64,000 nt of DNA, taken from NCBI GenBank assembly GCA_002189035.1, contig NEEC01000007.1:2604001-2668000 (forward strand), read 5' to 3'. The position numbers and the translations under genes were made by a program. Positions 4,092-59,227 of this stretch are shown in pieces; position 1 is the stretch's first letter; every line of letters begins with the position of its first letter. The notes under the pieces were generated by a model. It saw only the letters and a program-made list of their open reading frames with translations, had not been told where the DNA came from and made no database searches. The DNA is from Utricularia gibba. Its lineage: Eukaryota > Plantae > Magnoliophyta.

Positions 4092-5564
4092 TCAGAAGAG
4101 TTGCTCCTTGATATGTTTATCCAGTTTAAAGCCCACCCTTTCTGCTTCACGGCAGATTCGCCTGCACTTTGCCAGTCTTCCAGAAGCCATATACATTCCA
4201 ATGACACTTCTGTAAATATCCCAAGTAGGAGAGAAACCACATTCTTCAAGTTTGGAGAAGTATCTGGAAACTCTTGGCAGATCATTCAATGCCACAAAAA
4301 GCTTGATCAAAACCTGGTAAGCCGGGAGATCGAGCAGACAATCCGACGCCTCCATCTCCCATACGGCGGCCATAGCCTCTCGATATTTTCCTTCTGTGTA
4401 TCGACTGTGAATGAGGGTCGTGTACATTACAACACTAGGAGGGATACCGGAGTTTTTGAACCAATTGTACAGGGCTTCCACGATGTCGAATTTGCCCATC
4501 CTGATGCAGACTTTCATTATAGCTGTGCAGTCTTGCTGAGTTAATTGGAGATCATCTCTGTTGGCCAACTCTTCCAATAAGAGGAGAACGCAATCATGTT
4601 TGTCTGGGGTTTTCCCGAGTGCGAGGATAAGTTTGGCGTAGACACTGGGGTCTAGTGTTCTCTTACCTTCAATGGCAGCTGAGATAAGCCTCCAAGCAAG
4701 TCCCAAGTTTCCTCCCTTGATTGATCCTTTTACCACAGCCTCATAAACACTCCTGCTACTCAAAGTGACAAACTTGTCGAGATCAGAAGGCATTTTCAAT
4801 TCACCGGCCGCAGCCAAGACTTCGACGGTGGAAGCAAGGATTCGATCATCTGGGAACAAATGTGGATGGCTCTGAGCCCAACAGAAGACATGTAAAGCAC
4901 GGGCCGGAAGTCCCATATCACCCAGCTCCCTGATGGTGAGCGACAAAGACCCTTTTCTTAGGTAATGACTCCATTGATTGAGAACTGTAGATACATTGGA
5001 TTCGGTGGGGAGGCTTCTGATTTCCCTGGCTAACTTGATCAAAAACTCCGGATTCTTGTAAATGAGATTGCATAATGGCTGTCGCAAGGAACGAGAGATA
5101 TGAGTCCTGACCAGTTTCTTCGAAGTGGGAAATCCCAAAGGACGAATTTTGTGAGGAAGAGGCAAGGGAAGGGGTCTCTCCCTGCTCAAGTTACCGGGCT
5201 TCTGAGGGATTCTTCCCTGAAAAAGCGATGAAATAGCCTCTATTTCATCAGGTTCCCAAAGAATATTCCCACCATCATCACCCTGTTCAGCAAAAGAGTC
5301 GAAATCGGAACCAGAATCAAGATGATGAACTTGCCCTTCTTCAGGATTCGTCTCTTCAACGGGATGAAGCACTGGGAAAGAATCAGGTACAATCTCGGTG
5401 CGCCGACGATAACGTAGGTTCTTGGGAAGCGGCTCTACTTTTTTCTTTTTCCCAGTTTTCTTTCTTCCAGACCCCGCATCACGCACTACTCCAAGCGAAG
5501 ATCGGGAAACACCGGAGTAAAGAGGCCCGTACAAAAGCACTGAACAGGTCGAAAAACAGGCCAT
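4092..5564 (-). CDS. EMB975: P-class pentatricopeptide repeat protein, At2g01860/EMB975-like, intronless
   Basis: 490-aa ORF with WEPDEIEAISSLFQGRIPQKP, RKGSLSLTIRELG, QQDCTAIMKVC and PSVVMYTTLIHSRY, characteristic of this orthogroup; transit-peptide-like N-terminus. Confidence 0.85.
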   Translation of the reverse strand: MACFSTCSVLLYGPLYSGVSRSSLGVVRDAGSGRKKTGKKKKVEPLPKNLRYRRRTEIVPDSFPVLHPVEETNPEEGQVHHLDSGSDFDSFAEQGDDGGNILWEPDEIEAISSLFQGRIPQKPGNLSRERPLPLPLPHKIRPLGFPTSKKLVRTHISRSLRQPLCNLIYKNPEFLIKLAREIRSLPTESNVSTVLNQWSHYLRKGSLSLTIRELGDMGLPARALHVFCWAQSHPHLFPDDRILASTVEVLAAAGELKMPSDLDKFVTLSSRSVYEAVVKGSIKGGNLGLAWRLISAAIEGKRTLDPSVYAKLILALGKTPDKHDCVLLLLEELANRDDLQLTQQDCTAIMKVCIRMGKFDIVEALYNWFKNSGIPPSVVMYTTLIHSRYTEGKYREAMAAVWEMEASDCLLDLPAYQVLIKLFVALNDLPRVSRYFSKLEECGFSPTWDIYRSVIGMYMASGRLAKCRRICREAERVGFKLDKHIKEQLF

Positions 5565-6489
5565 GGATGCATCTGAAAACAGAGCAACACTTTAGCTCGT
5601 AACCCAGTATATCTTCAAATCAAAACCTCTCACGGGCAATTCGTCGAACATGGGTGTGAACATGAAACTCCATTCCCACACCCAGAGAATCCTCCCCGAC
5701 GGTTCTCACAAATTGCGTAACAGGATATCAGTAAACCTAATTCTCTCTCAAGGCTATCCCCCAATCCCACAGGAAGATAGATAGGATACTAAACGGTGAT
5801 GCAGAGGGAAAATGTGTACGTCATTATCAATTCAAAGACTCTGAAGCTTCTGTTCTCCAAACGACGAGTGTAATATTACAATCATCTGAGTATCCACAAT
5901 TGCGTAAATGCTGACATGGTATTTTAGTAAATTGAGTTATTTAATTTATTTAATTTTTTTTAAAAAAATTTGTATTCATTGCTAAAAATCCTAATATCAA
6001 AATAAAAATTACAAACTATACTTTAATTTTAAACATTGATATTTATAAATGATATTACAAAATTATAGAGTAAAACTATTCAAAATATCATAAAGAATCT
6101 AGAAATTAATTAAAATTTACCTAAATATGCTCAATAAGTGAATTTTGATGAATTTAACTTCAAGTATAAACCTTGGATATCCTAACTCTTCAACCATAAT
6201 TCAAAACGAGAGAGAAAAACACACATCCGTCTATCTCGCAAGAAAAATCACATCTTTGACATCCTATTTTTAAATCATTTACTTTTGAAAATGAGACTTC
6301 CTCACTTCCATTTCCATAAGAAATAAGAAAAAAATTTAATCATTTTCAGAAACATTTATCTTATTTATGTAAATAGTACTTCACCATTTTTGAAAATATG
6401 TAAAGATTATTTTAGTACTGGAGTTATTTTGCATGATTATAATTGATTATAATTTATATAAACATTTTTTACTGCTTATAATTAATGTT

Positions 6490-6730
6490 AAAGTAATGTT
6501 TTAAAGTTATTTATAAGTTAATTTATTTATAAGTTAAGTTTATAAGTAAAAAAATAAAATTATTTTTTTCTTATAAATTAAGTTATTTGTAAATTAAATT
6601 TATAAATTAATTTATTTATAAGTTAATTTTATAAATAGACAAAACATATTTTTTTATTATAAATGAAGTTATTTATAAATTAAATATACTAAATCAAACA
6701 ATAGGTACTTATAATTGACTTATAAGTTCA
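6490..6730. repeat. AT-rich array of AAGTTATTTATAA / TTATAAG units, possibly a decayed MITE
   Basis: The short motif recurs many times in both orientations; no clear TSD found. Confidence 0.4.
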
Positions 6731-9143
6731 AAATCTAAAAATCAATAATAATAATAATAATTGAAAATGTTAACATGGTTTTCCAGAAATGTTTATTAAA
6801 TTTGTAGAAATTTTTAATTTAGTAAAAATTGAATATGCAAAAACAGAAAGGAGGAAGTTAAAAGGAAAAGATATTAAAAAAACTTGTAATAATATTGATA
6901 TCTCACTTTCTTTTCAACTCCTAGTTGCTACTTCTCTTATATTTTTTCCTGGCTTGTCTCCAAACTCCTTTCAAGTATATTTTATCTATTCTCTAATCAT
7001 TTTCCATTTTTCTAGTTATTTAGTTTCTTTGGTTCCATTTTATGATTTTTAAAATCTTAATTATAAAAATATTAGAATGAATATATAAAATTATATATGG
7101 TTGAATGAAGCATTCTAATAATAATAGGATCTATCATTGTTTTAAAAAAGATTTAATTGAACATTTTTAGACAAATTTAAATTGATGCATTATATAAAAA
7201 AATATTATGTTTTTTGTTTGAAATAATTTAATATTATGATATTTATGTTTTAAATTATAAAAAATATTTTTGAAAATTCAAAAAGAAAATTAAGAAACTT
7301 AATAAAGTAAATTCAATAAAAAAAGACAATCAATGTTTTCAAAACCACTAATGATGTTGTGATAGGTCTCTCTTTTGCTTCAAATTCAATTCAGTCTAAT
7401 TTAAGATGTATTCTATAACCATCAAATAGACTTTATTCATCTTATGAAAATTGAGAAATCACATTTCTCAAAAGTTGTTCCTATAAGATGAGATGACCCT
7501 TTTTGTAATATATGACTTTAATAACTGGAATAACTAATCAAAGGCTGATTGGAAGTAATTTTAGGATATCAAATTATCGAACCTATGATTTCAATTCCTT
7601 CTTTTGTTCACTATTGCTTTTTATTTTTTCCAAACATATTCAACAATTGGAAGTTCGGACAAAACATGTCATTATGATAAACATTAATAATCAAATGTAT
7701 CATTCTAAATTATGAATGCATAATGTCACTTGAATTAGAAAATAGTAAGATAATACATGTATGATATTAACAATGTAAATCAATAATCTTCAGTACTCAA
7801 ACAATATGAACTAATAATATTTGACACAACAAATATTAGAAGATTAAATATATTTGACACGACAAGCAGTACATACTTATTATATTAATGGATAGTAAAC
7901 ACACAATTTATAGCAGACAAGAGAAACAAGATTTGCATGTAAAATAGTTTTAAATTCTTGCTTATTGAGTCAATATTTGAAACCCAATTTAATTCTTCAA
8001 AATCAATTCTATTCTCGTAAAATTATTTTTATCTTTCAAATATATAATAAATTATTTTCTACAAGATTATATTTGATAATCATTCAAATTCTATCAGAAT
8101 TATAAGATGATTATTTTTCAGTGGGGATTTAATTTTTAAAAGGTGATTTAAGATTAAATTTATAATTATTAATCATTCTTTTATGAATAATTATAATTAA
8201 TATTATTTTAACTTATTAAAAATACTTTAATTTTGGAATTATAATTGTAATATAAATCTATTTAAATCAAATTTATGACATAAAATATAGTTTATAAGTT
8301 TTATATTCTAGTATTATAATATTTTATTTATTAAATACAATTTTTAATTTATGAATTTATAATATATTACTATTAATAAATATGTTATTTAATTATACAA
8401 CATATTTTTAATTTTATAATAATCATTTTAAAAATTAATTTAAAAATATATAAATTTTTATTCTATCAAAAATTTTAATTTTGCTACAATTGGTTAGCAT
8501 AAACCTTTGGATATCCCCCATTTGTTGGGTGGGAAATGTAAATAGAGAGAAATTAGAGGTGTCAACTGTCAAGTGGACCGGACCACCGTATCCTTTCTAC
8601 CTCCCATACGCCAATCAATGACAGGCGGCGAATCAACGACGACCGATTTTCCACTCCAGCGTTTACTCTTTCTTCTCGTTGCCAACGTTGAATTCAAAGG
8701 GATGCAGCCAAACAACCAATGAAAAGCGAAGAGCATTTTCAACAATAAACTAATGCAACAGTGTCAAGATTCTGTACCCTCAATCCCCCACAATGCCGAT
8801 CACCACCGAAATGACTTCAATTCTTCATCATTGCCCACTTTGGTAGGCGCCCGAGTCGTCAAAACTCAGTTTTTGACCATCGAAAACCCCATATCCGTTT
8901 TCACTACCCTCTTGATATCTTCGTCTCCCTGGTTTTGATGATATAGCTCCAGACCCAGATAGCAGGGGGAAGAAATTGCTCCTTTGTTTGAAGCTATCTT
9001 TTTATGGGGTTAGATACTGCAAAGATTGCATCTTGCATACTTTTCCTGTTGTCAATCTCATTAATCTTGTTGGGGTTATAGATAATGAGATCCTTAGCAG
9101 CTTTGCTTCTCATATATCCATCGTAGAGTTTAAATTGTTCGGG

Positions 9144-10322
9144 ATGGAGGCGTCATCTGGCAGTTCCGGTTCCCCTGCTCCCTTTCTCTTGAAGACATAT
9201 GAGATGGTGGATGACCCTTTGACAAGTTCTGTTGTTTCTTGGAGCCATACGGGTCATAGTTTTATTGTTTGGAATCCTCCTGCGTTTGCCAGAGATTTAC
9301 TCCCCAAGTACTTCAAGCACAGCAATTTCTCTAGCTTCATCAGGCAGCTGAATACATACGTGAGCTTTTTAATCATTTCTCTTGAGCTTACATCCAAATT
9401 TGCGCCCCTGTTGTGCTCTGTAACTCGTGCCTAGTTTATCGATTGATTCAATAAAAGGGAACTTTACCTTCATAACATTGCTTTTCACACATCTTAGTGT
9501 TCTGGGGCTTAAATTTGAGTAGTTGTATGATGGTTTGATAGCTTTTTGCAGGGTTTTAGAAAGGTTGATCCTGATCAATGGGAGTTTGCCAACTTGGAGT
9601 TTATTCGAGGGCAAAAGCATCTTCTTAAGAATATCCATAGGCGAAAACCGATACATAGTCATTCAGTAAGCCAGCTGAGTTCTTCTCCGGTTAATGATTC
9701 TGAGAGAGCTGAGTTTGAGGAAGAGATTGAGCGACTGAAACAAGACAAGATCTCACTTGAATCACAGCTTGAGAAGTATAAAATTGAGAATCAAGGCTAC
9801 CGGAACCAACTCCGGTTATTGGCACAAGCATTGCTGAATACTGATCAGGGGCAGCCATATTTCATGGAACAGCCTGAAGGTCCAAGCAAAAAGAGAAGAT
9901 TAATAGGTTACGATCAGGTGAATCCCCTGCAAGATAGTACCATTTTATCATCTTTTGGCGTCGAAGATGTCTATAAAGCAGATAGTCTATTGGAGAAATT
10001 CTTCCCTGGGATCATCCACCACATTCCACCAGGAGCCAAGAATCGAGAAATGGCTGCAGAATTAGCAGTATCATCTGGAGATTCTGATCTGAATGTTAAA
10101 CCATGCACTCCTGAGTGCCACAGCTTAGTGTTGGCTTCCCATTCCTGTCCCAGCATTCATAGCCCTGAAATTTCTTCCATAAAACCTGCAGAAAATGGAA
10201 GCATTCCACCATTGCAACCTGGGGCAAATGATGTTTTCTGGGAACAGTTCCTGAGTGAGGCTCCAGTTTCATCTCTATCACAAGTAGTAGTGCATTCCCA
10301 CGTGAAGACTAGTACGACATGA
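9144..10322 (+). CDS. HSFA4: Heat shock transcription factor, class A4-like; intron 9360-9551
   Basis: DNA-binding domain [14 protein letters not shown]...[16 protein letters not shown]|[14 protein letters not shown] with the conserved HSF intron position; NLS KKRRL; C-terminal AHA motif [13 protein letters not shown]. Confidence 0.85.
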
Positions 10323-10595
10323 CTTGAAAGGAGACAAGTTACAGCTGCAAAATCTTCTCTTGATGCTTAGCTTGAAAGTCTCTGAATGTACAGCGAATAA
10401 GAATAGTGTAAAGCATTGCATATAGCTTATGTTTTGTAGAAAAGATGCTACCGTTTGCCGAGCCATCCCTTGCCCGTTTCCGGATACAACGGCAGATCGA
10501 TCATAAGCTTCAGTGAGTATTTTTCCGGATTCTTCTGTGTTCAACGCAGTTGTTACTCTCTATTATGTTGAAAATTGAATCGAATACTTACGTGT

Positions 10596-12545
10596 ATGGC
10601 AAAAATACGCTCAATTTCTGTGCTTCGGACCAAATGTGCCCGTTCGTTTTCTACGGCGGCCGCCGGCGATCCGTCGGAATCGTTCATCGCTTTGCACATT
10701 CGCGATCGGCTCCAGGAAGTTGATGTTTTGTCGGGTCTTCTAAAAGAATGTGCGGGTCTCCGCTCTATTTCACTGGTTCAGCAGATTCACTCCACCATCG
10801 TCACGGGAGGACAGTCGAAGCGCAAGTTCGTGATGAATCACTTGATGAATGCGTACGCTAAATTAGGAGAGGATGAGCAGGCCATGAAGGTGTTCGACAA
10901 AATGCCGGATCGAAATATCATGTCCTACAATATAGTGGTTGGTGGGCTGATACGAAACGAGAAATTAGGCGCCGCAGTAGATGTCTTTAACGCAATGCTG
11001 GAGAAGAACACAGCCTCATGGAATGCGATTATCGCAGGTCTTATCAACTTTCAGTACAATGACTATGGTTTGAAACTGTTCACTGAAATGCACACAAGTG
11101 GTTTTTTGCTTGATGAGTACACTCTGGGGAGCGCATTAAAGGGCTGTGCAGGTTTGAAAGATCTGAGAAGGGGAAAACAGGTGCATTGCTTCTCTATAAA
11201 ATCCGGGTTGCAGCTCAATTTGGTGGTCGGAAGCTCATTGTCCCACATGTACATGAGATGCAGCTGTCTGAAAGATGGTGAGAAAGTGATTCATTCGATG
11301 CCCCTTCACAATGTTGTTGCGTTTAACACGCTGATCGCCGGCTTGGTGCAGAATGGGGACCCGGAGGGTTCCTTGGATCAGTACAGGGCAATGAAAGCAG
11401 CTGGATTCAGGCCGGACAAGATAACTTTTGCTAGTGCTATAACTTCGTGCACCGATCTATCTACTCTAGGACTGGGGCGACAGATTCATGCTGAGGCTTT
11501 GAAAGCAGGATCATTATCTGTTTCTGCAGTGACTAGTTCTCTTATCAGCATGTATGCACGGTGCGGCTGCCTAACCGATGCAGACTTAGTTTTTCTCCAA
11601 AGAGAAGAAACTGGTGATGACCATGTTCTTTGGACTTCGATGATTGCTGCATACGGCCTACATGGAAGAGGAGAAGAAGCTATTGAGATGTTCAGAAGAA
11701 TGGAGATGAGGGGAATGGAAGCTAATGACATAACTTTCTTAAGCATACTCTATGCTTGTAGTCATTCAGGTCTGAAAGATCAGGGCCTTGAATTCTTCAA
11801 CATGATGGTGAATAAGTATGGTCTGGAGCCAAAGGTTAAACACTACACATGTGTGGTTGATCTCCTTGGAAGAGCAGGGCGCATAGAGGAAGCCGAATGC
11901 ATCATCGAATCCATGCCAATGAAACCAGATCCAGTCATTTGGAAAACCCTGCTGTCAGCTTGTAAAACTCACAGAAACACAGCAAAAGCTGAATCAATAG
12001 CTAACAGGATCCTCTCCATGGACCCGCAAGACACGGCAGCTTATGTCCTCCTCTCAAACTCCCAAGCCTCTGCTAAGAACTGGGAACACACAGAAAACGT
12101 AAGGCGAACAATGAAGTCTCAGATGATCACAAAGGAGCCTGGAATGAGCTGGTTCGAGTCGAAAAACAAGGTCCATCGTTTCATCGTGGGAGATAACTCC
12201 CACCCTCAATGGGAGATGATCATCTCTTATTTGCAGGAACTGATATTGGAACTCAGATCACATGGCTATGTACCTGAAACGTCTGCCGTTTTGCACGACA
12301 TGGATTTGGAGGAGCAGGAAGATAGTCTGGGAAACCACACAGAGAAGTTAGCGGTGGCTTGTGCTCTGCTATTGCTGCCCCATGGTGCTCCCATCAGGAT
12401 CATGAAGAACTTGAGAGTGTGTGATGACTGCCACGCTGCAATGAAGTGCATTTCTAAGGTCAGAAACAGAGAAATAGTCATCCGTGACTCCACCAGATTC
12501 CATCATTTTAAAGAAGGCATCTGTTCCTGTAGAGATTACTGGTAA
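10596..12545 (+). CDS. PLS-class PPR protein with E/E+/DYW domain (RNA editing factor type), At2g41080-like, intronless
   Basis: PLS repeats, PGMSW box, HTEKLA (HxE), CDDCH (CxxC) and terminal DYW. First ATG at 10596. Confidence 0.92.
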   Translation: MAKIRSISVLRTKCARSFSTAAAGDPSESFIALHIRDRLQEVDVLSGLLKECAGLRSISLVQQIHSTIVTGGQSKRKFVMNHLMNAYAKLGEDEQAMKVFDKMPDRNIMSYNIVVGGLIRNEKLGAAVDVFNAMLEKNTASWNAIIAGLINFQYNDYGLKLFTEMHTSGFLLDEYTLGSALKGCAGLKDLRRGKQVHCFSIKSGLQLNLVVGSSLSHMYMRCSCLKDGEKVIHSMPLHNVVAFNTLIAGLVQNGDPEGSLDQYRAMKAAGFRPDKITFASAITSCTDLSTLGLGRQIHAEALKAGSLSVSAVTSSLISMYARCGCLTDADLVFLQREETGDDHVLWTSMIAAYGLHGRGEEAIEMFRRMEMRGMEANDITFLSILYACSHSGLKDQGLEFFNMMVNKYGLEPKVKHYTCVVDLLGRAGRIEEAECIIESMPMKPDPVIWKTLLSACKTHRNTAKAESIANRILSMDPQDTAAYVLLSNSQASAKNWEHTENVRRTMKSQMITKEPGMSWFESKNKVHRFIVGDNSHPQWEMIISYLQELILELRSHGYVPETSAVLHDMDLEEQEDSLGNHTEKLAVACALLLLPHGAPIRIMKNLRVCDDCHAAMKCISKVRNREIVIRDSTRFHHFKEGICSCRDYW

Positions 12546-14138: not shown

Positions 14139-14656
14139 GCCACATTTGGTAATGGCTTCATCTTAACTATCATCTCATGTTCTCTTCCATTAAACCTGGA
14201 AGCTTAGATTCTTGTTTTTGCAACCTCAAGTTAGTTGGAAGTGAACATCAGAAGAAGCTTTTGTGTTACATTGGGTAGGGGCACTGCAGTGTGAGGTCTT
14301 TGTTCATCTGCTTTTGTGGTATCAGACAATGGTTTGCCAGAAATGTCATCACCTGTTTTCTTCCAGCATCTTGTCTGGAGGCTACTGTAGCAACAATGCC
14401 GCAGGTAGAAATTTCACTACAGGGGAAGTGAAAACACTTTTGGATGTTTCCCAAACGAAGCCATCAATTACCACAACTTTGCCTATTCTGGGCCTTGCGC
14501 ATCAGGCCCAACTGAAAGTCAGGCCCATTCAAATAATTACGAAATATATTTATTTATATTTATTAACAAAACAATAAAAAGGTTGAGTCAAATATTTATT
14601 TGCAATATATGTAAAAAAAGTTAAATACAATACTACTCCTATTAATGAATTCCATA

Positions 14657-15166
14657 TGTTATGGGTGAAATCGGTATCCGGTGAGAGGCCGATTTTAGGT
14701 GATAGGCGCGGTCGGGAATGCCACACTTAGTCACCTTCTTCACGGTTAGTACAATTAAAATAAGAGTGAACATGAATCTTTTACGTAGAAACCGTCGGAG
14801 AGCGGAAAAACCACGGAGCTGCCGGAGCTCGTCGGAAAAGAGTTTCACTAGGTGGAGGTCGTAAAAAAAAGGAGAATACAACTTGAAGAAATCTTTTTTT
14901 TGAGTCCAACCTCTTTCTTGTCATCATTTCGTCTATTTATAGGAGAGCTCACTCTGACCGAATTCTGGTGTTTGCAAACATCGGTTGGTTTCTGCTCCTG
15001 CTATACGATCTCGCTTTTCAGATATCGGCCGCCTGTTATGCCGTAATTCGGCCGCTTTTCAGGCTGTGTCATCACCTGTCGATCTATCGTCTGGCGTTAT
15101 CCCTTCGGGATCTCTTTTGGCAGCCTTTTAGGAACCGATTACCCTTGGACGATTTTTCCCTTATCA
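14657..15166 (-). repeat. 3' LTR (510 bp)
   Basis: Direct repeat of 18013-18546; about 26 substitutions by hand count (mostly transitions), one 1-bp and one ~24-bp indel. Purine-rich AGAGGGG (minus strand) adjoins its inner edge. Confidence 0.9.
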
Positions 15167-15377
15167 TTCAGCCCCTCTGATTCACCGATACTAGCCCTTT
15201 TCGGGGTAAATCGAGGGATCAGAACTACTGCGATACCGATTCTTGAGTTGCCGCTTCCCCCGAATAGGCCACATGCCATTCTCTACCACGCGTCGGCTCG
15301 TTGGCACGCCACGTTTTTTCCCGCTCATTCTGGGTACTTCAAACGTCACGACGCTTCGTCTCCCTAACCTTTCCCGT

Positions 15378-15385
15378 ATAAATAA
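15378..15385 (+). promoter_or_regulatory. TATA box for the antisense gene inside the retroelement
   Basis: TATAAATA followed by a pyrimidine-rich leader, a GT-AG leader intron (15515-15620) and ATG at 15641. Confidence 0.5.
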
Positions 15386-15640
15386 GCGCCCTTCGCGTCA
15401 GTTCTTTCCTTTGCCCTTTCTGTTGCATGCAAGAGTTTTGTGCCCTCCGTGCTCCGTCACACTTGTCCGCCGCTCGATCGTCGCGATATCTGTCGGAAAA
15501 CGTCAATTTTCCAGGTATCATTCGGCTCTTCGTCTTTTCCGTTCGGTCTTCTGGGATTTTTGACGGGTCCCCCTTGTCGTTCTAAGTCCTTCCCTCGTCC
15601 TAACTCCTGCCTCGTTCTAGGGTTTTGGGCTTCTTTGAAA

Positions 15641-17705
15641 ATGGGTAAGAGATCTAGTGAACTAAACATTCCTTCCCTTCGCATTCGATACTCGATCCCT
15701 GATGAGTTCCAGCTTTCTCATGCTCGAGATACTGAAATCCCTTGGGGGGTTGGTAAGGACCCCCTGCCTCCGTTCAGTCTCCCAATTCCACTTGCCTATT
15801 TTGAAAGCGGTTTACGCTTCCCTCTTCACCCTTTAATAGTCTGTTTTCTCTATACTTTTGCAATTCCGATTTAATGTCTTGCCCCGAATTCCATATTCTG
15901 CTTTACCACTTTCCTTTTCTATTCGGCCGGTATGGATCCGGCTATGACTTTGGTAGACTTCTGTCATCTCTTCAAGATAGCCGTTCGTAAAGCTAAGTCC
16001 CCGATGGATGGCCGATCTCACTTTCAATTCCGCCAATTTGAAGATAACCCCAACTTTGTTGTTAAAGCCCCCAATACCCACCACGATTGGCGGTCTTCTT
16101 TCGTTTGGATAGCTCCCCCTTTGGGTTCTCGGTGGAACTTCCCAATCGATCCCCCAACTCCTTTCAGGATCAAGATCTTGGGTGTGTATCGGTCTTCTCT
16201 CGAATCTCGCGAAAGTCCTTTATGAGAGGCTTAGTCGGGGCTCAGTTCGGTATGAGTCTCGTGCCTTGATGTTCTCGGGTGAGTCGTTGAAAAGATCATG
16301 TATTATCGATCGTTCCCGAGACCTCCATTGGCCCGATATCATTCCTTTCGATGGCATCGATCCGAGGAGCCTTCCTCTTAGCCCCTCTTCACCCTTCCCT
16401 CTTGTTCCGGCTTCACCTCCAATTCCCCCACCTGTTCAAACTGGGGCCCCAAGAAAAAGAAGAGGGTTAAGACAGTTGCGCACAAACCCTCAAAGAGGCA
16501 GAGAGGTAGTCGGGTTCAGCTTTCCCGAGTCTCAGAATCGGCACTATGCCTTATTGCTTTTCCTTCTTTCGTTTTCAGCTGAAGATATGGTTCGGAGAAG
16601 CTCTCTGGAAGATTCGGTGATGGCGCGGTTCTCCGCCGAGATGCAGAGGGCGCAAGAACCCGAGGATCCCTCCCCTGCACCAGTTTGTCTCCTATTTAAC
16701 AGCTACCGCGAATTCCCGATTATAACCCCCCCCTCCCCTTTTTTTTGGTTTTTCTTTCAGGTTGATACGATTGGAGCTCAGTTGGACGCCGCTGATCCTT
16801 CCTCGGGGGAAGATCAAGTAGTGGAAGTCTCCGAGACCCGAGAGTTGACTTCCCGTCCTTCAGCCGGGAAAGGGAAAGAGAAACTTCCTTCATCACCCGA
16901 TCTCAGCGATACTCCTATTCTTGATGCAAGATTCTTTTTGGCTGGTGCTTCAACATCGGCTCTTCCAATCGAGTTACAGAGGGATTCTGCCCTCGTAGAA
17001 GTAAGGGACAACCCGGTGCTTCCTCTACCCTCAGTTCCAGCTGAACTAAGGGGAATCCTGGATAGAGCTATGTCTAGTACCTCGGGTGTTCAGCCGGAGA
17101 CGGTACTTGAAGGGATCTGGCAGGTACGTATCCCGTTTCCTCTTCGAAATTCTAATTAGTCGGTCCATGACTAGGGATATTCTTTTAGGCTCTGACTCTT
17201 GGGTGGGGAATGGTTAGAGAGATTGACTCTCAATCGGAGGAAGTCTCTCGGCTTCGGGCCCAAGTTGTGGCTCAGAGCGCCCAGATAAAGTTGTTGGAGG
17301 AGGAGGGGAGTTCGTTGAAAATCGTTTTAGGGAAGCGTAGCCGCCAGGAGGAAGAACTGCGAAATGTGATCGAGGAAATGGGAAAGACGGTTGACGACGC
17401 TCAATCAGAGAGAGAGGGCTTCAAAGTCCGATTTGAGGAGGCAGAAGCGGAGTTAGAGCATGCCAGAGGCCGCATTTCAGCATTGGAGGCCGAATTACTT
17501 GATCAACAAGCATCTCGACAGGGTCTTCTGGATGACTTTGTCAATTCGGCCTGTTTTGCCGAACTCTCCGATATCTATGCAGGAGATTTAATCGGCTTAC
17601 TTCTATACCGTCAGAGATGACAGTTCTATAGGCTCGTACATCCGTCTCCTTGAGATCTAAAGAGACGAAGACCAAATCTGGATGATGAAATATGGCTGCT
17701 AGATC
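15641..17705 (+). pseudogene. Antisense extra gene of the retroelement (Transposase_28-like N-terminus, basic NLS, coiled-coil C-terminus); spliced and degenerate
   Basis: YFESGLRFPLHPLIVCFL...LAPNS and HDWRSSFVWI resemble the putative gypsy-type transposon domain. GT-AG introns at 16506-16578, 16683-16760 and 17124-17188. One in-frame TAA (15872-15874) and frameshifts near 16180, 16445 and 17615. Confidence 0.75.
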
Positions 17706-17934
17706 AGAGCGTGATATACAGCTCCCCAGCCGGTTGAATCTCGCGTTGTGGGCGGCGGTTGAGGATCGTTCTCTCTTGGGCGTTGGAGTTGAGACCTGAA
17801 GGTGCTCGGAGGTCGGTAAGGATTTCCGTTAGCAGGGCCTTCAGTTGCTCCCTGCTAGTGATCATAAGGCCGAGATCTTGAGCGTCGGCACTTCCGTCAT
17901 GAGTCGGGTCGGTGGCTGTGCTATTTTCCGCCAT
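17704..17934 (-). pseudogene. Probable 5' stub of gag, cut off by the internal deletion
   Basis: 76-aa ORF starting about 55 nt after the PBS in the retroelement sense orientation. The assignment is positional only. Confidence 0.45.
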
Positions 17935-17990
17935 GACTCGTGATTAGTGAGTGACTCCTGTGGGTTTCTCAAATGGGACTGTGGAACGTA

Positions 17991-18008
17991 GCACCACGGT
18001 GGGCGTCA
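17991..18008 (-). promoter_or_regulatory. Primer-binding site complementary to the tRNA-Lys 3' end
   Basis: Minus strand TGACGCCCACCGTGGTGC, 4 nt inside the 5' LTR; 16/18 match to TGGCGCCCACCGTGGGGC (recalled plant tRNA-Lys 3' end complement). Confidence 0.8.
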
Positions 18009-18012
18009 ATTA

Positions 18013-18546
18013 TGTTATGGGTGAAATCGGTATCCGGTGAGAGGCCGATTTTAGGTGATAGGTGCGGTCGGGAATGCCACACTTAGTCACCTTCTTCACG
18101 GCTAGTACGATTAAAATAAGAGTGAACATGGATTTTTTACGTGGAAACCGCCGGAGAGCGGAAAAACCACGAAGCTGCCGGAGCTCGCCAGAAAAGAGTT
18201 TCACTAGGTGGAGGTCGGAAAAAAAAGGAGAATACAACTTGAATAAATCTTTTTTTGAGTCCAACCTCTTTCTTGTCATCATTCCGTCTATTTATAGGAG
18301 AGCTCACTCTAATCGAATTTTGGTGTCTGCAAACATCGGTTGTTTTCTGCTCCTGTTATACGATCTCGCTTTTTAGATATCGTCCGCCTGTTATGCCGTA
18401 ATTCGGCCGCTTTTCAGGCTGTGTCATATGGCCATACCTGTTAGATTTTTGACAGATGTCGATCTGTCGTCTGACGTTATCCCTTTAGGATCTCTTTTGG
18501 CAGCCTTTTAGGAACCGATTACCCTTGGCCGATTTTTCCCTTATCA
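18013..18546 (-). repeat. 5' LTR (534 bp)
   Basis: Starts TGATAAGGG and ends CCCATAACA on the minus strand; minus-strand TATAAATAG at 18288-18296. Confidence 0.9.
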
Positions 18547-18872
18547 CCATATAAAACTGATTCATTTATATCACATTTATCTAAATTAAAAAAATGATTT
18601 TTAATAAGATATTTTGGTTTTGATTCTAAGAGGATTGGAATGAAAGGTGGCCTACTCCACTATTTAGGATATGGGAAAAGAAAAGTTATTGGATCCAATT
18701 GATAAATATTAAATATTTCTTAATTCTGATTGGCTGCTAAATATTAAATATATCTGAATGCTGATTGGCTGCTTCGTCTTCTTCAGCTTCACAACTACCC
18801 CATTTTGACCCGAGACCTCCGTGTCTGATCTTTTGCTTTCCCTGCTTTTCCCTCTACTCCCTGTCGCCGGCG

Positions 18873-20117
18873 ATGGAAATCCCTCAGACGGACGCCACCT
18901 GGGAGGAGATCCTGGGAAAAAATAATTGGGAGGGCCTTCTGGACCCTCTGGACGACGGTCTGCGCCACCTGATCCTGCGCTGCGGCGACCTCTGCCAAGC
19001 CACTTACGACTCCTTCAACAACGACGAGAACTCCAAGTACGCCGGCAGCTGCCGCTACGGAAAAGAGAACTTCTTCTACAAAGTCATGTTCCCCGCCGCG
19101 GACGATTACCGGGTCTTCGCGTATCTGTACGCGGCGGCGCGTGTCAGCCATATCGAGGCTATGTTTTTCTCTTCCAAATCGAGGGAGTCGTGGGATAGGG
19201 AGTCCAATTGGATTGGGTACATTGCTGTGACTTCCGATGAGGTCAGTGCCGCCCTCGGCCGCCGCGAGATCTACGTCCCCTGGCGTGGGACTACCAGAGA
19301 TTACGAATGGATTAACGTTTTAGGGGCCAAATCTGAAGAGGCCAACATTCTGCTCAAACCCAAGTCCTGGGTTAAAAAATCCGCCAACGACAAAGACGAT
19401 GACGACGACGGCGACGAAGTACCCAGAGTTATGAGGGGCTGGCTGTCGATTTACACCACCAGCGACCCCCGCTCTGAGTTCACGAATCACAGCGCCAGAG
19501 ATCAGCTTCAATCGAAGATTCACCAGCTACTGCGGAAATACAAGGACGAGAATGTTAGCATCATCACCACCGGGCACAGCCTCGGCGCTTCCTTAGCGAT
19601 CCTTTGCGCTTTCGATTTAGTCGAAAACGGGATTACGGAGATCCCCGTCACGGCGATCGTCTTCGGAAGTCCGCAAGTGGGGAACAAGGAATTCAACGAG
19701 AGACTCCACAAGTTCCCAAATCTCAACGTTCTGCACGTTCGAAACAAAACCGACACGATCCCTCTTTACCCTAGCTGGCTTCTCGGGTACAGAGACACAG
19801 GGGTTCAATTCGAGATCGATAATCGGAAATCGCCGTTTCTGAGGCCGGACAGCAGCATCGGAGATCGGCATAACTTGCAGGCCATGCTTCATGTGGTGGC
19901 CGGATGGAATGGGGCGCACGGGGAGTTCAAGATGAGGGTGAAGAGGAGCTTGGCGCTGGTGAATAAATCCGCGGAGATTATAAGGGAGGATTACAGGATT
20001 CCGGGAGCTTGGTGGGTGGAGAAGAACAAAGGCATGGTTCGTGACGCCGACGGCGAATGGATATTGGCGCCGCCGGCCGATGAGGATCAGCCGGTGCCGG
20101 AGGAGTTCGACGATTGA
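18873..20117 (+). CDS. Phospholipase A1-IIdelta-like (class 3 lipase), intronless
   Basis: TWEEILGKNNWEGLLDPLD, ESNWIGYIAV, GHSLG nucleophile motif, HNLQAMLHVVAGWNG and WWVEKNKGM; At2g42690-like. Confidence 0.92.
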   Translation: MEIPQTDATWEEILGKNNWEGLLDPLDDGLRHLILRCGDLCQATYDSFNNDENSKYAGSCRYGKENFFYKVMFPAADDYRVFAYLYAAARVSHIEAMFFSSKSRESWDRESNWIGYIAVTSDEVSAALGRREIYVPWRGTTRDYEWINVLGAKSEEANILLKPKSWVKKSANDKDDDDDGDEVPRVMRGWLSIYTTSDPRSEFTNHSARDQLQSKIHQLLRKYKDENVSIITTGHSLGASLAILCAFDLVENGITEIPVTAIVFGSPQVGNKEFNERLHKFPNLNVLHVRNKTDTIPLYPSWLLGYRDTGVQFEIDNRKSPFLRPDSSIGDRHNLQAMLHVVAGWNGAHGEFKMRVKRSLALVNKSAEIIREDYRIPGAWWVEKNKGMVRDADGEWILAPPADEDQPVPEEFDD

Positions 20118-21277: not shown

Positions 21278-22348
21278 TTAGGAGTTGGGTCTAGCACGCT
21301 TTAGCTTCTCAAGCCGGACTTGGGATTCCACAAACATCTGCATTCTCTGCAACTCCAGATCTTTGGTGAATTGAATCCTCTGTTTCTCCAACTCCACCAA
21401 CTGCCGCTGCTTGGCTTCTTCAACCTTTTCATATATCTGCGCCAATTTCGATATCGCATCCGCTAATTTAGCGTACCCTTCACCGACCAAAGGCCTTGAT
21501 CTTTTCATTCCTGTAGCAGCCGCCGGCGGCTGAGGAATACGACGCCAGGAGACGGAATTGTTCTCTTCCTCCTCCTCCTCCTCCTCATCCTCGTAATATT
21601 CGTCTTCCTCTCCAGCCTCCATCGCTGCCGCCGCCGCTGCCATGACAGAGAAATTTCTTTCTGTGACAATTCCAGGACCAGTCCTCTTTGACCTTGGCCC
21701 AACCGGCACTGACCAGTTAGGCAGATGGGTCGCGACCGGATCTCTCCCCCGGTGATTACTAATCGGAGACTTAGGGTAGTGAGGAGCCCCCGTGGAAGGG
21801 GATGATGATTTTTCAGACGACGATGAGTCTCTCCGGCGACGTTTCCCGGAATGACCATTGGCGTCGGCGTTCTTGCCGTTGGCCTTTGAGAAGGAGTGGC
21901 CGATGAAGGAGTCAAGGCTCTGAAAGTGGGGCCACGTGGAGACGTACCGGCCGTTGGATTGGGCGACCTTAGACTTCTCGATCTTGTACTTCTTCTTGAT
22001 TGTGTCGATTCGATTTTTGCACTGAACATCGGTGCGTTTAAGCTTCGCCGTCACGGCGTGCCGAGCGTTGACGGCTTCGGAAACCGCTTCCCAGTGCTTC
22101 TGCCGGAGGTTTCCCCGGTTGAGTTGCAGATAGTGCGAGCCCCATGCATCAATCAGTGTTCTGGTAGCGTCTTCCGACCAGCAATCTTCCCGGTTAGGAA
22201 AACCAGGATTCCGTAAGGATGCCGGCTGATTTTCCGGCGAAACGTCGTTTTCCGGTGGAGACTCAGGCGGCGAGGGTACCGTCTTCCCTTCGCCAAAGAA
22301 TTGGCTGTCCGGTGGCGGAGATGGAGTCTCTAGGGCTCGAGAAGACAT
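21278..22348 (-). CDS. Trihelix transcription factor, SIP1/ASIL clade
   Basis: REDCWSEDATRTLIDAWG...GNLRQKHW...RTDVQCKNRIDTIKKKYKIEK Myb/SANT-like trihelix domain, acidic run and C-terminal coiled coil (ELEKQRIQFTKDLELQRMQ). First ATG at 22348. Confidence 0.9.
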   Translation of the reverse strand: MSSRALETPSPPPDSQFFGEGKTVPSPPESPPENDVSPENQPASLRNPGFPNREDCWSEDATRTLIDAWGSHYLQLNRGNLRQKHWEAVSEAVNARHAVTAKLKRTDVQCKNRIDTIKKKYKIEKSKVAQSNGRYVSTWPHFQSLDSFIGHSFSKANGKNADANGHSGKRRRRDSSSSEKSSSPSTGAPHYPKSPISNHRGRDPVATHLPNWSVPVGPRSKRTGPGIVTERNFSVMAAAAAAMEAGEEDEYYEDEEEEEEEENNSVSWRRIPQPPAAATGMKRSRPLVGEGYAKLADAISKLAQIYEKVEEAKQRQLVELEKQRIQFTKDLELQRMQMFVESQVRLEKLKRARPNS

Positions 22349-23576
22349 GTCGGTGGCTTGCGGTGGCGGTGACGGCTGTGCAGATTGGAGGACCGGCTTC
22401 AGGCATCGACACCGGCGAAGGGTTAATTGAATCAACGATTCGAATTGTTTGCGTTTGCCCCTTTGGGTTCTAACATATTCATTTCAAGTACTCCTTCTTT
22501 GGGAAATTATCACTTTCGCCACATATCGATGCCCATGTTTCCGTTCCCCCCTTTATTCTTTCCTTTTTCTTTTCTAGTCCCCGTCATTTGAAAAACAAAC
22601 AAAATCAATCATTGCCCCATGTGCAAATGCAACTTAAATCTTGGATGCGTTTTGTGGCCCAATTGAAAAATTAATTTCATCTAGTTCAAATAAAATAGAT
22701 TTTAGTGTTATTTTCCATCTCATCATAATTAATTTTAGTATCAAAATATTAAATAAATAAACTTTATCAATGCTAAATCTAACAAATAGTTTAAATATTA
22801 AATGTTAGTATTCATGTAGGATATAATATTTGATAATAAAAAAGAGAGCTCAAGACTTTCATGTCTAACAAAACAAAGCTAAACTATTATTGAGTATAAG
22901 ATATCTTAAGATTGATGATGAATGACATAATCACGGAATTAAGTTATAGGAAATAAAAATACAAGTTGAATGAAAATCACTTGATGTGAATGATCATCAA
23001 GTGAGGGACTTAGGTAATGGTCTCAAATGAGCAAAAGATTGAGAATGATAATATGAATTGTCCACATTTGATAATTATAATGAACAAACAATTTTTGAAT
23101 GTTATATTATAAGTTTTATTATGTTTAATTGATATCATTAATATGAAAAGTATTTTATGTATGAGTCTCATAGAGAGTGTTTGAATTGTACTTCTCGAAT
23201 ATTGCTTATGTTTGTGCTCGATCGAAAGAGGCTAATTGAAGGCTTATTTCTCTTGAAAGTATTTTGAAAAATTCTTTATCTTCTAAAATATGAATTTCTG
23301 CCCCGGAAAGTACTTTGAATAATATCCTCTGGGTCCCTGTACTTTCCAAACCTTGTGGCCAAGCCCTGAACTTCAGAAAACTATGGGGTCCAACTTCTGA
23401 ATTTACTTTTGTGCCCCAAACATTCACAAATTGCCTCGGTGGGTAAGACTCGAGACACTTGCCGGGTGTGGCCTTTTTCTCCTTCTCGGTTTCATTTCTT
23501 TCCTTTTTTTTTTTTTTGAAGTATCAGCAACTGATACCATCCGGATTTCCGCGATTTCCAGTCTCTTGGATCGGCT

Positions 23577-47400: not shown

Positions 47401-50400
47401 TCGCTTTTTTCTTGCACCTCCTCTGCTGAAGTCTTTCCAATGGTTACATGTTCATAGCATTGCAAGTAGCTATTCCCTCTGTTTTTACTGTGCATTCAGG
47501 AGATACACATCAAATCTCATAATCCCGGGTATGTTGTGTTGGATAATCGGCCATCTGCTGCATTATGTGATATATTGGTTAATCTATAGAAATAATTCCA
47601 CACATTGTTGGGTGATATATTTAATTTCCTTTTTCCACTTTTCTCACCTTGAATTTAGGTTTGGAGATTCCTGATTGCTTTCGCTGATGTTCTTGGTCTG
47701 TGGCCGTTCACCCTAGATGAGTTTGTGCAATCATTGCATGACTTCGTAAGTCTAAAGCTGTGTTTCCTTTCTGCATCGCTTCATTTCATTCATTGATGTG
47801 GCTGATCCATTCTCTGGTCTCAGGATTCCAGGTTGTTAGGAGAGCTCCACATGGCCCTTTTGAGATGCATCATTAACGACATTGAAGAGGTTGCAAGAGC
47901 ATCAATTGCTTCAATGACAGCAAATCAAACTTCGGCTGCCATCTCTGCTGGTGGGCATCCAAAGATTGTGGAAGGGGTACGCTTTTAGCCATTTGTTTTA
48001 ACACGTGCAATGCCTTGAAAAGTTACTTACTCCTAGCACTTAGCAGGCTTATGCTTGGGGTTTGACTTGCTGAGTTGGCAGCGCCTCCTAACTCCATTAA
48101 CTTGGCCCGAAGTTTTGCGCCAGTTTGCTCTCTCAGCAGGTTTTGGGCCGAAGTTGAAGAAATCTAGTGCTAAATCTGCTTGTTTTGATGATGAGAACGA
48201 GGTATGGGACTTGATCATTATAAATAACGTGCATGGTTTCCATTGTATTTTCTGTGATGTCTGTTTTTTATTTGTGCAGGGTGACAATTGTGCGGATAAT
48301 ATATCAAACATACGAAGTGGAGCAGCTGCTGAGAATGCTTTTGCCATCATGCAAGAAAAAGGTTTTTCTAGACCTCGAAGATCCAGGCACCGGTTGACTC
48401 CAGGAACTGTGAAATTTGCAGCATTCCATGTACTTTCGGTGGAGGGGAGTACAGGACTTTCAATCCTGGAAGTTGCTGAAAAAATTCAGGTGGATTGGTT
48501 GTACTTTATCTACACCTTTTAACATATCGCTGACAAGTATCACCTTTTCTTCAAAGAGGTCTGGTCTTAGGGATCTGACAACGAGCAAAACGCCTGAAGC
48601 ATCAATTTCTGCTGCTTTGTCAAGGGATACAAAACTCTTTGAGAGAACAGCTCCTTCAACATACTGTGTACGCTCACCTTATCGAAAAGACCCATCTGAT
48701 GCAGAGCTGGTTCTGTCTGCTGCAAGGGAGAGAGTTCGATTATTCATGAATGGGAACACAGATGATGAAGTGGCAGAAGATGTTGAGAAGGATGAAGCTG
48801 AGAGGGATCCAGACTCAGAAAGTGATGTTGCTGATGATGCTGATGTTGATAATATTAGCTCTGGTGCAAAACTAGCAGGAGCTTCTTGTTCTAGGGAAAC
48901 AAACATGTATGAAAATGGCTTCGAATGTGCCGAGGATAATTGTCAGGAGCAATTATCAGGTTCTGTTACCGATGCCACTGGAGGTTCCAGCAGTAGATCA
49001 ACTTTGAAGCAGCCCATAGATACGATCACTCTCAATGGAGGACCAGCTGTTCAGCATCTGCAAAACACTGTGGCTGATGAGTGTGACTCTGGAGAGCATT
49101 GGGTCCGAGGGCTTACTGAAGGGGAGTATGGAACACTTTCAGTTGAAGAGCGTCTCAGTGCTCTGGTTGCCCTTGTTGAAACAGCAAATGAAGGAAATGC
49201 TGTCCGTATTGCTTTGGAGGTACAATTGAGTTCACTGAATAATGCACTGGTTTTTGCAGTATTATAATAATTTTTTGTCTTCTAGGATCGACTTGAGGCA
49301 GCAAATGCTCTAAAAAAGCAAATGTGGGCTGAGGCGCAACTTGATAAACGTCGATCAAAAGATGATCAGATGAGGTTGCCCTGCTCAACTATGGCAAGTG
49401 AAGGAGCAGAAAAAAATTTGGTTAGCGACTATGGGAGGAGCTCACAACTGAGAGTAGATACAAAATGTGATTCGCAGTTGGGATCTCCCAGAATGCCGCT
49501 TATAGATTTAAATGATCAGCAATGTGATGACATTTTTTTCAGCGACAGAATGGAAGCCAAGGAAGAATGCTCCTTTGTTAATGAAAACTTGTTTGAGCCT
49601 TCTGGATATGCCACAGAAAGGACACGATCAGATTTGAGAGTTCTGATTAATCACCAGGCTGAGGGGTGTACACATACCGGTCATTACCACTTGGACTAGA
49701 TCGCAGATATAACAGATATTGGCAGTTTATTGCATCTTCTTCTTGCAGTGATACTGGGTCAGGCAGGATATTTGTCGAGTTGTGCAACAATTCTTGGAGA
49801 ATGATTGATTCTGAAGAGGTTACTGAAATTTGTTTTTCTGTATTGTTGTGTGCATTACACAAAACTTTATTACTAATGAGGACTCGCATGCTACCCTGTG
49901 TAGGCTTTCCATGGTCTGTTATCTTCATTAGATGTCCGTGGGATCAGAGAGTCTCATCTGCATTCAATGCTGCGAAGCATTGAGCCATCTTTTAGGGACT
50001 CTGTTCGAAGAGGCCTGCTTCACTTCAATTCTGGTGCACAAATCCATCAAGAAACTAGAAAAAGTTTTCTTGAGGTAAGACAGCATTTTTACTAGTTCAG
50101 GTATCTCATAGAATGCAGCATCAACTTTATGTTCTTTTGTAAGGGGTTTTCTACATCACATACAATTGCAACTGAGCATGGAGGAACTGAAGCTACCGAT
50201 AAAATGGGTAAACATGAGGCGTTTGAATCATGGATGTGGAAGGAATGCTTCAACTGCAACACATTAGCTGCACTGAAGTATGGAACACTAAGGCGCCCAC
50301 GGTTGCTTGAAATTTGCAAGAGTTGCTATGCCTTGGTATGCCCATCTTTTGGCTGGGTATGCAGCTGTCCGGATAAAGGTTTTGATATCTCCAGCCATGA

Positions 50401-52140: not shown

Positions 52141-53913
52141 TCAGGCATGCAAACCAACCTTTGAGTACCTCTTGCAGAAGGCTTTCATTCTTCGTAAACC
52201 CACCTCAAGCAACGATGGCTCGACTGCAAATGTGATCCGTACCCAGTTCTTGAGCCCCACAGCAATCCCTGTGGCAGCAACAAATGCTGATTATGTTGGC
52301 ACATTGGATTATCTGCGGTTTTAAATGATGCAGCATCAGTATGAAATGCTGTCTTGAAAATGTTACCTGGTAAGATGACAACAGATTCTTCCTTTGCCAG
52401 CTTCACGCAGAAGTCTAAATCATCCTCAATGCCATTAAGAAGAGATGGCTCAAGCTTAACCTGAGAAAGTAGAAATGGATTTACTGCAAGTCGTGTGACA
52501 GATCACAGGTGTGTGTTTTGCTTTGTTTACCATTGCAGACATGGATGCTTCCGGTTTATGGAAGCAAGTTACACAAGGTGTGTCCTTGATGTGATTGTAG
52601 CATATCTCTGCGCACACTCGAAGATTGTTTACAATTTTGGACAAGAAATCACCTTGTGTGTCACTTAGAATTCGTGGAAGTGCCCCCTTCAGGGATATGA
52701 ATCAGAATATCAGAATGCTATGGATGATACAAATATCTTGAAACAGAGCAGATTTAAGAACCTGAACGAAGGTTGTAGGATCAGGGCTGATATCAGCGAA
52801 GCCTTTGATGCTCTCAATGACCTGCAGACAAGAAAAACTCTTGATGACACCGGGAAGAAACAAAATCAAGACAGGCTCAGAGGGTACCCCTTGTTCTGCA
52901 AGAACACCATCCGGATCATATGCCACAATCCAGCCGATTCTCCAACCAGGAACAGCCCATCTCTTAGATATCGACCCAATTGTTACAATTGGAGTGATGG
53001 ATCCGAATACCCCCAATGGAACAAAAGGAGTGTTTCCAAAGGTCAGGTGTCCATAAACTTCATCAGAAATCAATAAAATTCCAAGCTTCCTTGCCATCTC
53101 TGCAACCTATAGAAACAATCATCATAACCATCTACCAAATCAATTCAGAGAGTTGGCATGCATTAATTTAGTCCAGAAACCTTCCTCAAGTGTTCATATT
53201 TGTAAGTATTTCCACAAGGATTCCCAGGATTGATAATAACCATAGCTACGGTGTTGTCATCTGCCAAAGCTTCAACCCCAGCTAAATCCACTTCCCAGCC
53301 ATTCTCTGGAAGCAAGTTGTAATGACGAGTCTTGATGTGACCGTAGGCGCAACGGGCTTCATAGTAAGGGTAGCCTGGCCTCGGAAGCAATATATTTGCT
53401 TTAGGACGAGCAAGTGCAGTTAGAATCCCTTCCATTGCTTGACTGCAGCCAATTGTCAGGTAAACATCATCTGCTGATAATTTGTACGGAAGGTCCTTAG
53501 ACAAATACTCTGCCACCGCCCTGCACATGAAGAAGAACATCCCGTTAACTGTGATGAATCCATCGATGATCCGAAACGAAAATCTGCCATTGAAAGCACT
53601 GGATTTCTGAAAAAAAAAAAAAAAAACACCTGCGGGCCTCAGGAATCCCGGCGGAGGGAGGGTAGCCGTTGAAGTCGGCGCAGCGAAGGGCGTCGCAAAT
53701 GGCGTCTTCCGCGAGGTGGGTAATCGCGTAGGATGGGTGAGAGGAAGGGTCCCCATAACCCAGGACAACTACGGGTTTGTCGTCATCAGCAACGAGATTA
53801 TCGGTCAGCGTTACGAGTATACTTCTAATAGTTGACGGAGAAGCCTGTTGAAGATCCTCGTTTCCCAGGAAACGCCATTTTCCGACCGGTGATCCTCCCG
53901 TCTCCTTCTCCAT
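52141..53913 (-). CDS. TAT: Tyrosine aminotransferase (TAT/nicotianamine aminotransferase family), 7 exons
   Basis: [36 protein letters not shown] lysine in SISKRW and [10 protein letters not shown]. Confidence 0.92.
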
Positions 53914-58238: not shown

Positions 58239-59227
58239 CTACAGTGCTGGTGCCGGCGAAGGTATGCGAATCACCGGTTTCGCCGCAGGAGGAGTGGCTT
58301 TGGCCTGAGAATCAGAGGAGCCACATGGTGGCGTGGGAGGAGTTTCTTTAGTTTCTGGTGATGGTGCAAGAACAGGGGCATTGTGTGTGGCAACCCACGT
58401 GGCCGGAGCAGGCGACGGGGAAGGAGGATGTGGGTTTGACTTTACCGGGGGCGGACTTGTGGCCGCCGGTGGGTGAGGAGGATCATATGGACATACAGTC
58501 GGAGGTGGCTGCATCGTTGCTCCCGGAGATGGCGATGGCGCGTGCAACGGGGTTGGTTTTCCTGCATGAGAAGGCGACGGCGCTTGCACTGGGGTCACAC
58601 CTATTCCTGCATGAGCAGGCGACGGCGAGTGCACGGGGCCTGCTCGCGAAGGAGACGGTGCGCGAGCAGGGCCTGCTCTCAAAGGAGACGGCGCGTGGTG
58701 AGGCGCTGCTGTTCCCGTTCCTACAGGCGATGGAGCTGGCGGCGACGGGTTACAACCCATCGGCGGAGCCGCCGGCGGCATCACATCAACAGCAAATTTC
58801 TGGCCTTTTTCACAGTTCTCATCATGCCCACTTATGAAGTACATCTTCCCCAGCACGGTGAGCTTATACCTGGAATCCCCATTCCTCATGATCCTCAACG
58901 GATTATCCCTGTTGCATCTGGCGTAATCATCTCCGCTCACGACCAGCACAGAGTCACGCCCTTTCTCATACTCGAAAACTGCACCAACCCATCAGAAATG
59001 TCAAATTCAAGACAATCTCCACACAAAAATCGGGTTTTGGACATACCCAGTTCATCGTTGAGTCGAAAACGATGAGTTTTAGCCCAATATTCGTAGCTCC
59101 GGCAGGTGTTCGGCGTCCAACCATCTTCTTCTCCGACGTAGAACGTGTGAGCATCAGCTGAGACAAACAACGCCATTGCAATGAAGACACAAATGCAGTA
59201 GTAGTAGTAGTAGTTGTTTCCCGCCAT
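58239..59227 (-). CDS. Early nodulin-like phytocyanin with Pro-rich AGP-like tail; intron 58979-59046
   Basis: Signal peptide, then FYVGEEDGW...WAKTHRFRLNDEL|VFEY...DSVLVV...YFISG...NCEKGQK (copper ligands absent), followed by APSP repeats. Confidence 0.88.

Follow-up and report, generated by a model that had tools for sequence, protein, structure and literature searches.

The window analysed here, a stretch of 64,000 nucleotides from contig NEEC01000007.1 of the bladderwort Utricularia gibba (GCA_002189035.1; positions 2,604,001 to 2,668,000, forward strand), carries at 14657-18546 a long terminal repeat (LTR) retrotransposon of 3,890 bp. All coordinates below are those of the window. The element reads on the minus strand, lacks gag-pol, and its interior of 2,846 bp (15167-18012) houses a broken, plus-strand accessory gene next to the 3' LTR. 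We describe its architecture, the accessory gene and the probable origin of the short form.

Architecture of the element

The boundaries and the parts belonging to the element itself, with the primer-binding site (PBS), the polypurine tract (PPT), the target-site duplication (TSD) and one small open reading frame (ORF), are as follows.

14652-14656, no strand: left TSD, CCATA, by sequence inspection
14657-15166, minus: 3' LTR, 510 bp, TG...CA ends, TATA-like sequence at 14934-14941; the element sense is the minus strand
15167-15178, minus: PPT-like purine-rich run, short and imperfect, adjoining the 3' LTR, read from the sequence
17621-17706, no strand: 86 nt without an assigned feature
17704-17934, minus: 76-codon ORF (17707-17934) with its stop at 17704-17706, at the gag-start position
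17991-18008, minus: PBS of the tRNA-Lys type, 16/18 match with a perfect 12-nt core
18013-18546, minus: 5' LTR, 534 bp, TG...CA ends, 25-bp indel at 18428-18452, TATA-like sequence at 18289-18296
18547-18551, no strand: right TSD, CCATA, by sequence inspection

When the LTR pair was aligned, 481 positions matched and 28 differed (21 transitions), and there were one 1-bp and one 25-bp indel, corresponding to an identity of 94.5% and a Kimura two-parameter (K2P) distance of 0.058. The 25-bp stretch at 18428-18452, present in the right LTR and missing from the left one, is the sole sizeable indel between the two. The LTR pair is flanked on both sides by a perfect 5-bp CCATA duplication; alignment and inspection of the flanks thus bore out the two LTRs and the perfect TSD that an earlier, sequence-only reading of this DNA had described. 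At a rate of 1.3e-8 substitutions/site/year the K2P distance gives an insertion age of ~2.2 million years, and at 7e-9 an age of ~4 million years, so that the insertion would date from roughly 2-4 million years ago. The load of small indels is low, with two in the LTR pair and about two in the interior. The element is an old, dead and decayed copy.

Read on the minus strand from 18008 to 17991, the PBS is TGACGCCCACCGTGGTGC and lies 4 nt inward from the right LTR. Its 12-nt core is identical to the published antisense probe of Arabidopsis cytosolic tRNA-Lys, an oligonucleotide that starts CGCCCACCGTGGGGC (PMC7226135), and the match rises to 16 of 18 positions once the TGG complementary to the CCA end is counted. 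The two mismatches would fit an old, decaying copy. The opposite orientation was checked as well, and no TGG-type site was found beside the left LTR. The TATA-like sequences of the LTRs read TATAAATA on the minus strand and TATTTATA on the plus strand, so the strand is not decided by the TATA alone, and the use of this box as a strand marker in the sequence-only reading did not hold by itself. The minus-strand orientation follows instead from the positions of the PBS and the PPT; the tRNA-Lys PBS and the placement on the minus strand, both proposed in that reading, were confirmed by the identity of the 12-nt core and by the PPT-like run.

The presence of coding remnants was investigated by cutting the six frames of the interior from stop to stop and scanning the minus-strand pieces of at least 47 residues, together with the long plus-strand pieces, against Pfam at E <= 1. 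No gag, protease, reverse transcriptase (RT), RNase H, integrase or chromodomain was found in the pieces scanned; RT and integrase were the two whose remnants had been named beforehand as contrary evidence. The plus-strand gene and its promoter fill 15378-17620, and 17704-18012 is taken up by the PBS, the leader and the small ORF, so there is no room for pol. With LTRs, PBS and PPT present and gag-pol absent, the element has the structure of a non-autonomous LTR retrotransposon.

The 76-codon ORF begins 57 nt past the end of the PBS, where gag would begin, and had been described as a gag-position stub joined near 17705 to the plus-strand gene, the two filling the interior. Both are indeed there, with the 86 nt at 17621-17706 left over, and nothing but its position marks the stub as gag: no relative or domain was found for it in Pfam, NCBIfam, a word-based protein search or Atlas (protein-language-model neighbours). 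Position 17705 itself turned out to be nothing other than the stop of this ORF. The breakpoint is not placeable from this locus, and the deletion junction would lie somewhere within 17621 to about 17934.

At both DNA and protein level, no second copy of the LTR or of the interior was detected in the 64-kb window, which also contains no autonomous partner sharing the LTR ends and the PBS; no other retroelement ORF of at least 140 residues was seen there.

The plus-strand accessory gene

The gene that occupies most of the interior runs antisense to the element, and its predicted parts are listed below, with the untranslated region (UTR) of the leader and a nuclear localisation signal (NLS) included.

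15378-15385, plus: TATAAATA box of the antisense accessory gene, read from the sequence
15515-15620, plus: putative 5'-UTR leader intron, GT...AG, 106 nt
15641-16505, plus: exon 1, broken, ATG at 15641
15809-15913, plus: TRP28 (PF04195-type) core in exon 1, six conserved positions with exact spacing
16448-16468, plus: basic NLS-like PKKKKRV, exon 1, frame 2
16506-16578, plus: intron, GT-AG with pyrimidine tract
16579-16682, plus: exon 2
16683-16760, plus: intron, GT-AG with pyrimidine tract
16761-17123, plus: exon 3
17124-17188, plus: intron, GT-AG with pyrimidine tract
17189-17620, plus: exon 4, coiled-coil tail, TGA at 17618-17620

All predicted introns are of the GT-AG type and measure 65-106 nt. 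The first splice requires a passage from frame 2 to frame 0 and the third from frame 0 to frame 2, and these required frames are exactly the open ones, which supports the four-exon model. Exon 1 carries a stop at 15872-15874, corresponding to position 42 of the TRP28 core, and the conserved residues resume in frame beyond it. Further on, frame 2 of exon 1 holds five more stops in 16223-16381, where frame 0 is the sole open frame, and the first splice then calls for frame 2 once more; the simplest reading would be two frame changes within this exon. An extra intron at 16184-16381 in place of the two frameshifts was considered less likely, as its donor is weak and frame 0 there is open and protein-like. 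The stop within the TRP28 core, together with the two changes of frame, makes the accessory gene dead at this locus.

The assignment to TRP28 was examined with the best-conserved positions of the Retand TRP28 proteins, G21, P25, L34, P46, N47 and F55 (Vicient 2025, PMC11963269). Exon 1 has all of these, spaced exactly as in the published proteins; the six-frame translation of the window contains this pattern at a single site, and 200 shuffles contained it at none. The Atlas neighbours of the first 77 residues are Streptophyta clusters with PF04195, the first and the third scoring 0.97 and 0.96 with 204/256 features shared, a lead and not an alignment. Membership of the accessory gene in the TRP28 family is likely on these grounds, and not proven. 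The coiled coil of exon 4 showed a weak similarity to SMC/Rad50 arms (TIGR02168, E = 1e-4, a 95-residue match), which reaches 20 bits versus a cut-off of 567 and does not comprise the SMC ATPase head and hinge. The Smc search suggested with the sequence-only reading thus yielded a weak match to a coiled-coil arm, and the protein is not an SMC protein. Matches of the same kind to SMC arms have been reported for Retand 3' reverse ORFs (Neumann et al. 2019; Vicient 2025, PMC11963269).

In the homology searches the exons served singly as queries. Word-based protein searches with the 325-residue product of the longest ORF and with the N-terminal TRP28 piece gave no match, and neither did viral contigs searched with two protein pieces and one LTR pattern, metagenome contigs searched with the PBS/LTR pattern, or prokaryote genome contigs searched with the LTR pattern. 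An exact look-up of four window ORFs in protein collections was also empty; the lipase query among them was TTG-started, so the blank means little. Two results were rejected. The 116-residue second half of the TRP28 region gave, by full HMMER, three matches to internally repetitive and unrelated proteins (RRM and others), which are spurious, and the sole metagenome match to the TRP28 piece (L001, Ga0299906_10038105) is bacterial, a chance stretch of 18 residues and not a homologue.

The 325-codon ORF at 16182-17159 runs through two of the predicted introns without a stop and is not the real protein. ORF-based annotation of such accessory genes would therefore return a wrong protein, and the read-through of introns may lie behind the lack of relatives for the 325-residue query. 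An 18-bp unit is repeated 2.5 times at 15577-15619, within the putative leader intron; a larger tandem array, such as Retand elements often have in the region from pol to the 3' LTR, is absent from the element.

Lineage and origin of the short form

In the Retand lineage 99% of elements have a 5-bp TSD, 57% have a PBS of the tRNA-Lys type and 86% have a 3' reverse ORF (Neumann et al. 2019, Additional files 4 and 5). PF04195 is confined to the 3' reverse ORFs of this lineage, whose elements measure 6.4-21.6 kb (Neumann et al. 2019), and the antisense TRP28 gene is carried by 97% of the recently active Retand clusters (Vicient 2025, PMC11963269). The element studied here shows the Retand traits that lie outside pol, namely the 5-bp TSD, the tRNA-Lys PBS and, next to the 3' LTR, a gene in reverse orientation; its length of 3.9 kb is far below that of every element in the two surveys. 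The criteria that define the lineage (REXdb non-chromovirus OTA|Tat|Retand), phylogeny of RT, RNase H and integrase and an extra RNase H domain (aRH), are inapplicable because the element has no pol. Taken together, the TRP28 spacing, the PF04195 neighbours in Atlas, the coiled-coil tail, the TSD and the PBS mark this as a Retand-like element. The proposal that a minus-strand Tat/Retand-type element had lost gag-pol and kept its 3' antisense gene found support in the TRP28 motif, the PBS, the TSD and the Pfam scan.

The explanation that we prefer, and hold to be rather probable, is that this is a deletion derivative of a Retand-lineage Ty3/gypsy LTR retrotransposon which arrived already shortened and in which the accessory gene was retained by its position. 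The element keeps what reverse transcription and integration need in cis, that is both LTRs, the PBS, ~300 nt that comprise leader and first ORF, and the PPT-like run, together with a single contiguous 3' block that contains the spliced antisense gene with its TRP28 motif, NLS, coiled coil and own TATA. As no gag, protease, RT, RNase H or integrase is encoded, it could have moved only through full-length Retand proteins acting in trans. The copy, inserted on the minus strand in a gene-dense region where it then decayed, would have been shortened beforehand, either through an already deleted master (a non-autonomous family) or through a template jump of RT. The existence of a family with this junction may be put at about even, and a one-off copy shortened during reverse transcription appears improbable. 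We infer, and do not demonstrate, that arrival in the shortened state is the most likely course, because all the cis parts and the 3' block survive one clean loss of several kilobases while the other indels are of 1-25 bp.

Several points weigh against this explanation. Only one copy is at hand, and a junction shared by copies with different TSDs is unproven. Fast loss of DNA is expected in the bladderwort family, which raises the prior for a deletion that followed the insertion. The PPT is a short one, two positions of the PBS do not match, and the lineage is not confirmable by RT phylogeny in an element that has no RT. The hidden Markov model of PF04195, whose use had been suggested with the sequence-only reading, matched neither half of the domain at E <= 1; the domain is split by the stop and was scanned in pieces. 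The protein, viral and metagenome collections yielded no relative for any of the exons.

The most serious alternative, which we regard as possible and on balance unlikely, is that a full-length Retand element inserted here and that illegitimate recombination later removed gag-pol at this locus only, in which case there would be no non-autonomous class. The copy is old (K2P 0.058) and visibly decaying, as the stop, the changes of frame, the 25-bp indel of the LTR and the mutations in the PBS show, the window contains no further copy of LTR or interior, and an intact TSD is equally expected after such a deletion. Against it stands the nature of the loss, a single clean event of several kilobases that spared the PBS, the leader, the PPT and the whole accessory gene in a sequence whose other indels are of 1-25 bp.

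A different question is why the antisense gene was kept. It could be selected cargo, the region being held in a propagating non-autonomous class as a need in cis (packaging or replication) or as a help in trans (regulating or shielding the family). The prevalence of antisense TRP28 genes, present in 97% of recently active Retand clusters, makes some function likely; the gene is however inactivated in this copy, and constraint is not measurable from a single copy. The retained 5' leader RNA, when folded, showed no unusual structure and was no more stable than its shuffles (z = 0.08). In the summarised account of the non-autonomous Retand of Silene latifolia (Kejnovsky et al. 2006, summarised in PMC12477314), this short element consists only of LTRs with expanded tandem repeats between them, so that, as far as that account reaches, the antisense gene is not a general cis requirement. 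Nothing at this locus supports selection for the antisense region, and hitch-hiking beside the PPT and the 3' LTR is an economical explanation that accounts for the retention equally well; selected cargo is a doubtful reading to which we give little weight. The fuller form of this idea, in which a very small plant genome hosts the short form as a propagating family with the TRP28 gene as its sole cargo, kept since the gene or its DNA benefits the family, is just as doubtful. If true, it would make TRP28 a portable helper module able to outlive gag-pol.

Spliced subgenomic RNAs occur in some plant Ty3/gypsy elements, and the gap left by gag-pol might in the same way be an intron of the sense transcript, removed before packaging and reverse transcription. 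The loss of a single clean block would agree with such an origin, which we nevertheless consider highly improbable, since donor and acceptor are not checkable without the parent sequence and we know of no such splicing in Retand. Least credible of all is an origin outside Retand, with unrelated LTRs around a captured host gene (transduction) or a large retrotransposon derivative (LARD) of another lineage: an element without RT offers no lineage placement and Pfam PF04195 was not matched, but the TSD, the tRNA-Lys PBS and a reverse TRP28/coiled-coil gene combine in Retand and in no other REXdb lineage, and TRP28 is reported solely from transposons.

Surroundings, known relatives and significance

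The window is gene-dense and contains two PPR genes (one of the DYW type), a trihelix/Myb-SANT factor, a WHIM/HARE-HTH protein, an aminotransferase fragment and a plastocyanin-like protein (phytocyanin). The surrounding gene regions are the following.

4092-12545: gene region
21278-22435: gene region
48416-49267: gene region
53163-53768: gene region
58239-58949: gene region

The adjoining stretch 18547-20117 contains an intronless gene for a class-3 lipase (PF01764, E = 5.5e-29). Its first ATG is at 18873, the element ends ~325 bp upstream of this ATG, and the dead accessory gene points toward the lipase gene. Read-through or effects of the LTR on the lipase promoter are conceivable, and the nearness of the element may matter for the regulation of the lipase. 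A 35-bp unit is also present upstream of the lipase, in two tandem copies with a 91% match at 18703-18773, each with an ATTGG (a reverse CCAAT box).

Good descriptions already exist of non-autonomous LTR elements and of defective Retands. The non-autonomous Retand of Silene latifolia is reportedly ~3.7 kb long. It resembles the present element in its lineage, its shortness, its Retand LTRs, the lack of gag-pol and its mobilisation by an autonomous partner; its interior is made of tandem repeats, whereas the present one holds an antisense gene and no tandem array. Dasheng of rice is a further case of a non-autonomous element, sharing the transposition machinery of its Retand-lineage autonomous partner RIRE2; it is said to have no coding capacity. 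An antisense gene is also found in gene23 of maize Grande and in other Retand 3' antisense ORFs, all in full-length elements; gene23 reportedly has a promoter of its own and a nuclear-type signal and lies antisense in the region from pol to the 3' LTR. TRP28 is the hallmark of the Retand lineage. LARDs and terminal-repeat retrotransposons in miniature (TRIMs) likewise combine LTRs, PBS and PPT with an absence of gag-pol, but their interiors are non-coding, whereas the present element of 3.9 kb falls between both size classes and carries a recognisable gene. RLG_Sabrina and RLG_WHAM of wheat, with RLG_Wilma as partner, are gypsy elements that are long-lived, devoid of RT and integrase, partner-dependent and still partly coding; they keep a sense GAG, while the present element has no gag and keeps an antisense gene (PMC9744471). 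The defective, recently active Retand clusters of Vicient 2025 (PMC11963269) miss some domains and carry the antisense TRP28 gene; these lack only GAG, aspartic protease (AP), or RNase H plus integrase (RH+INT), and their interiors measure 7.4-12.9 kb. Forms without pol cannot appear in that survey because its elements were mined through RT (PMC11963269). No description of a Retand derivative keeping only the TRP28 gene was found in the searchable literature, outside which the originals of Kejnovsky 2006 and Jiang 2002 lie.

What the antisense TRP28 gene of Retand does has yet to be established (Vicient 2025, PMC11963269). One decayed copy demonstrates no more than the existence of such a structure; a family without gag-pol that keeps the TRP28 gene would be a natural experiment on the role of this gene, be it an action in trans, a need in cis or simple hitch-hiking.

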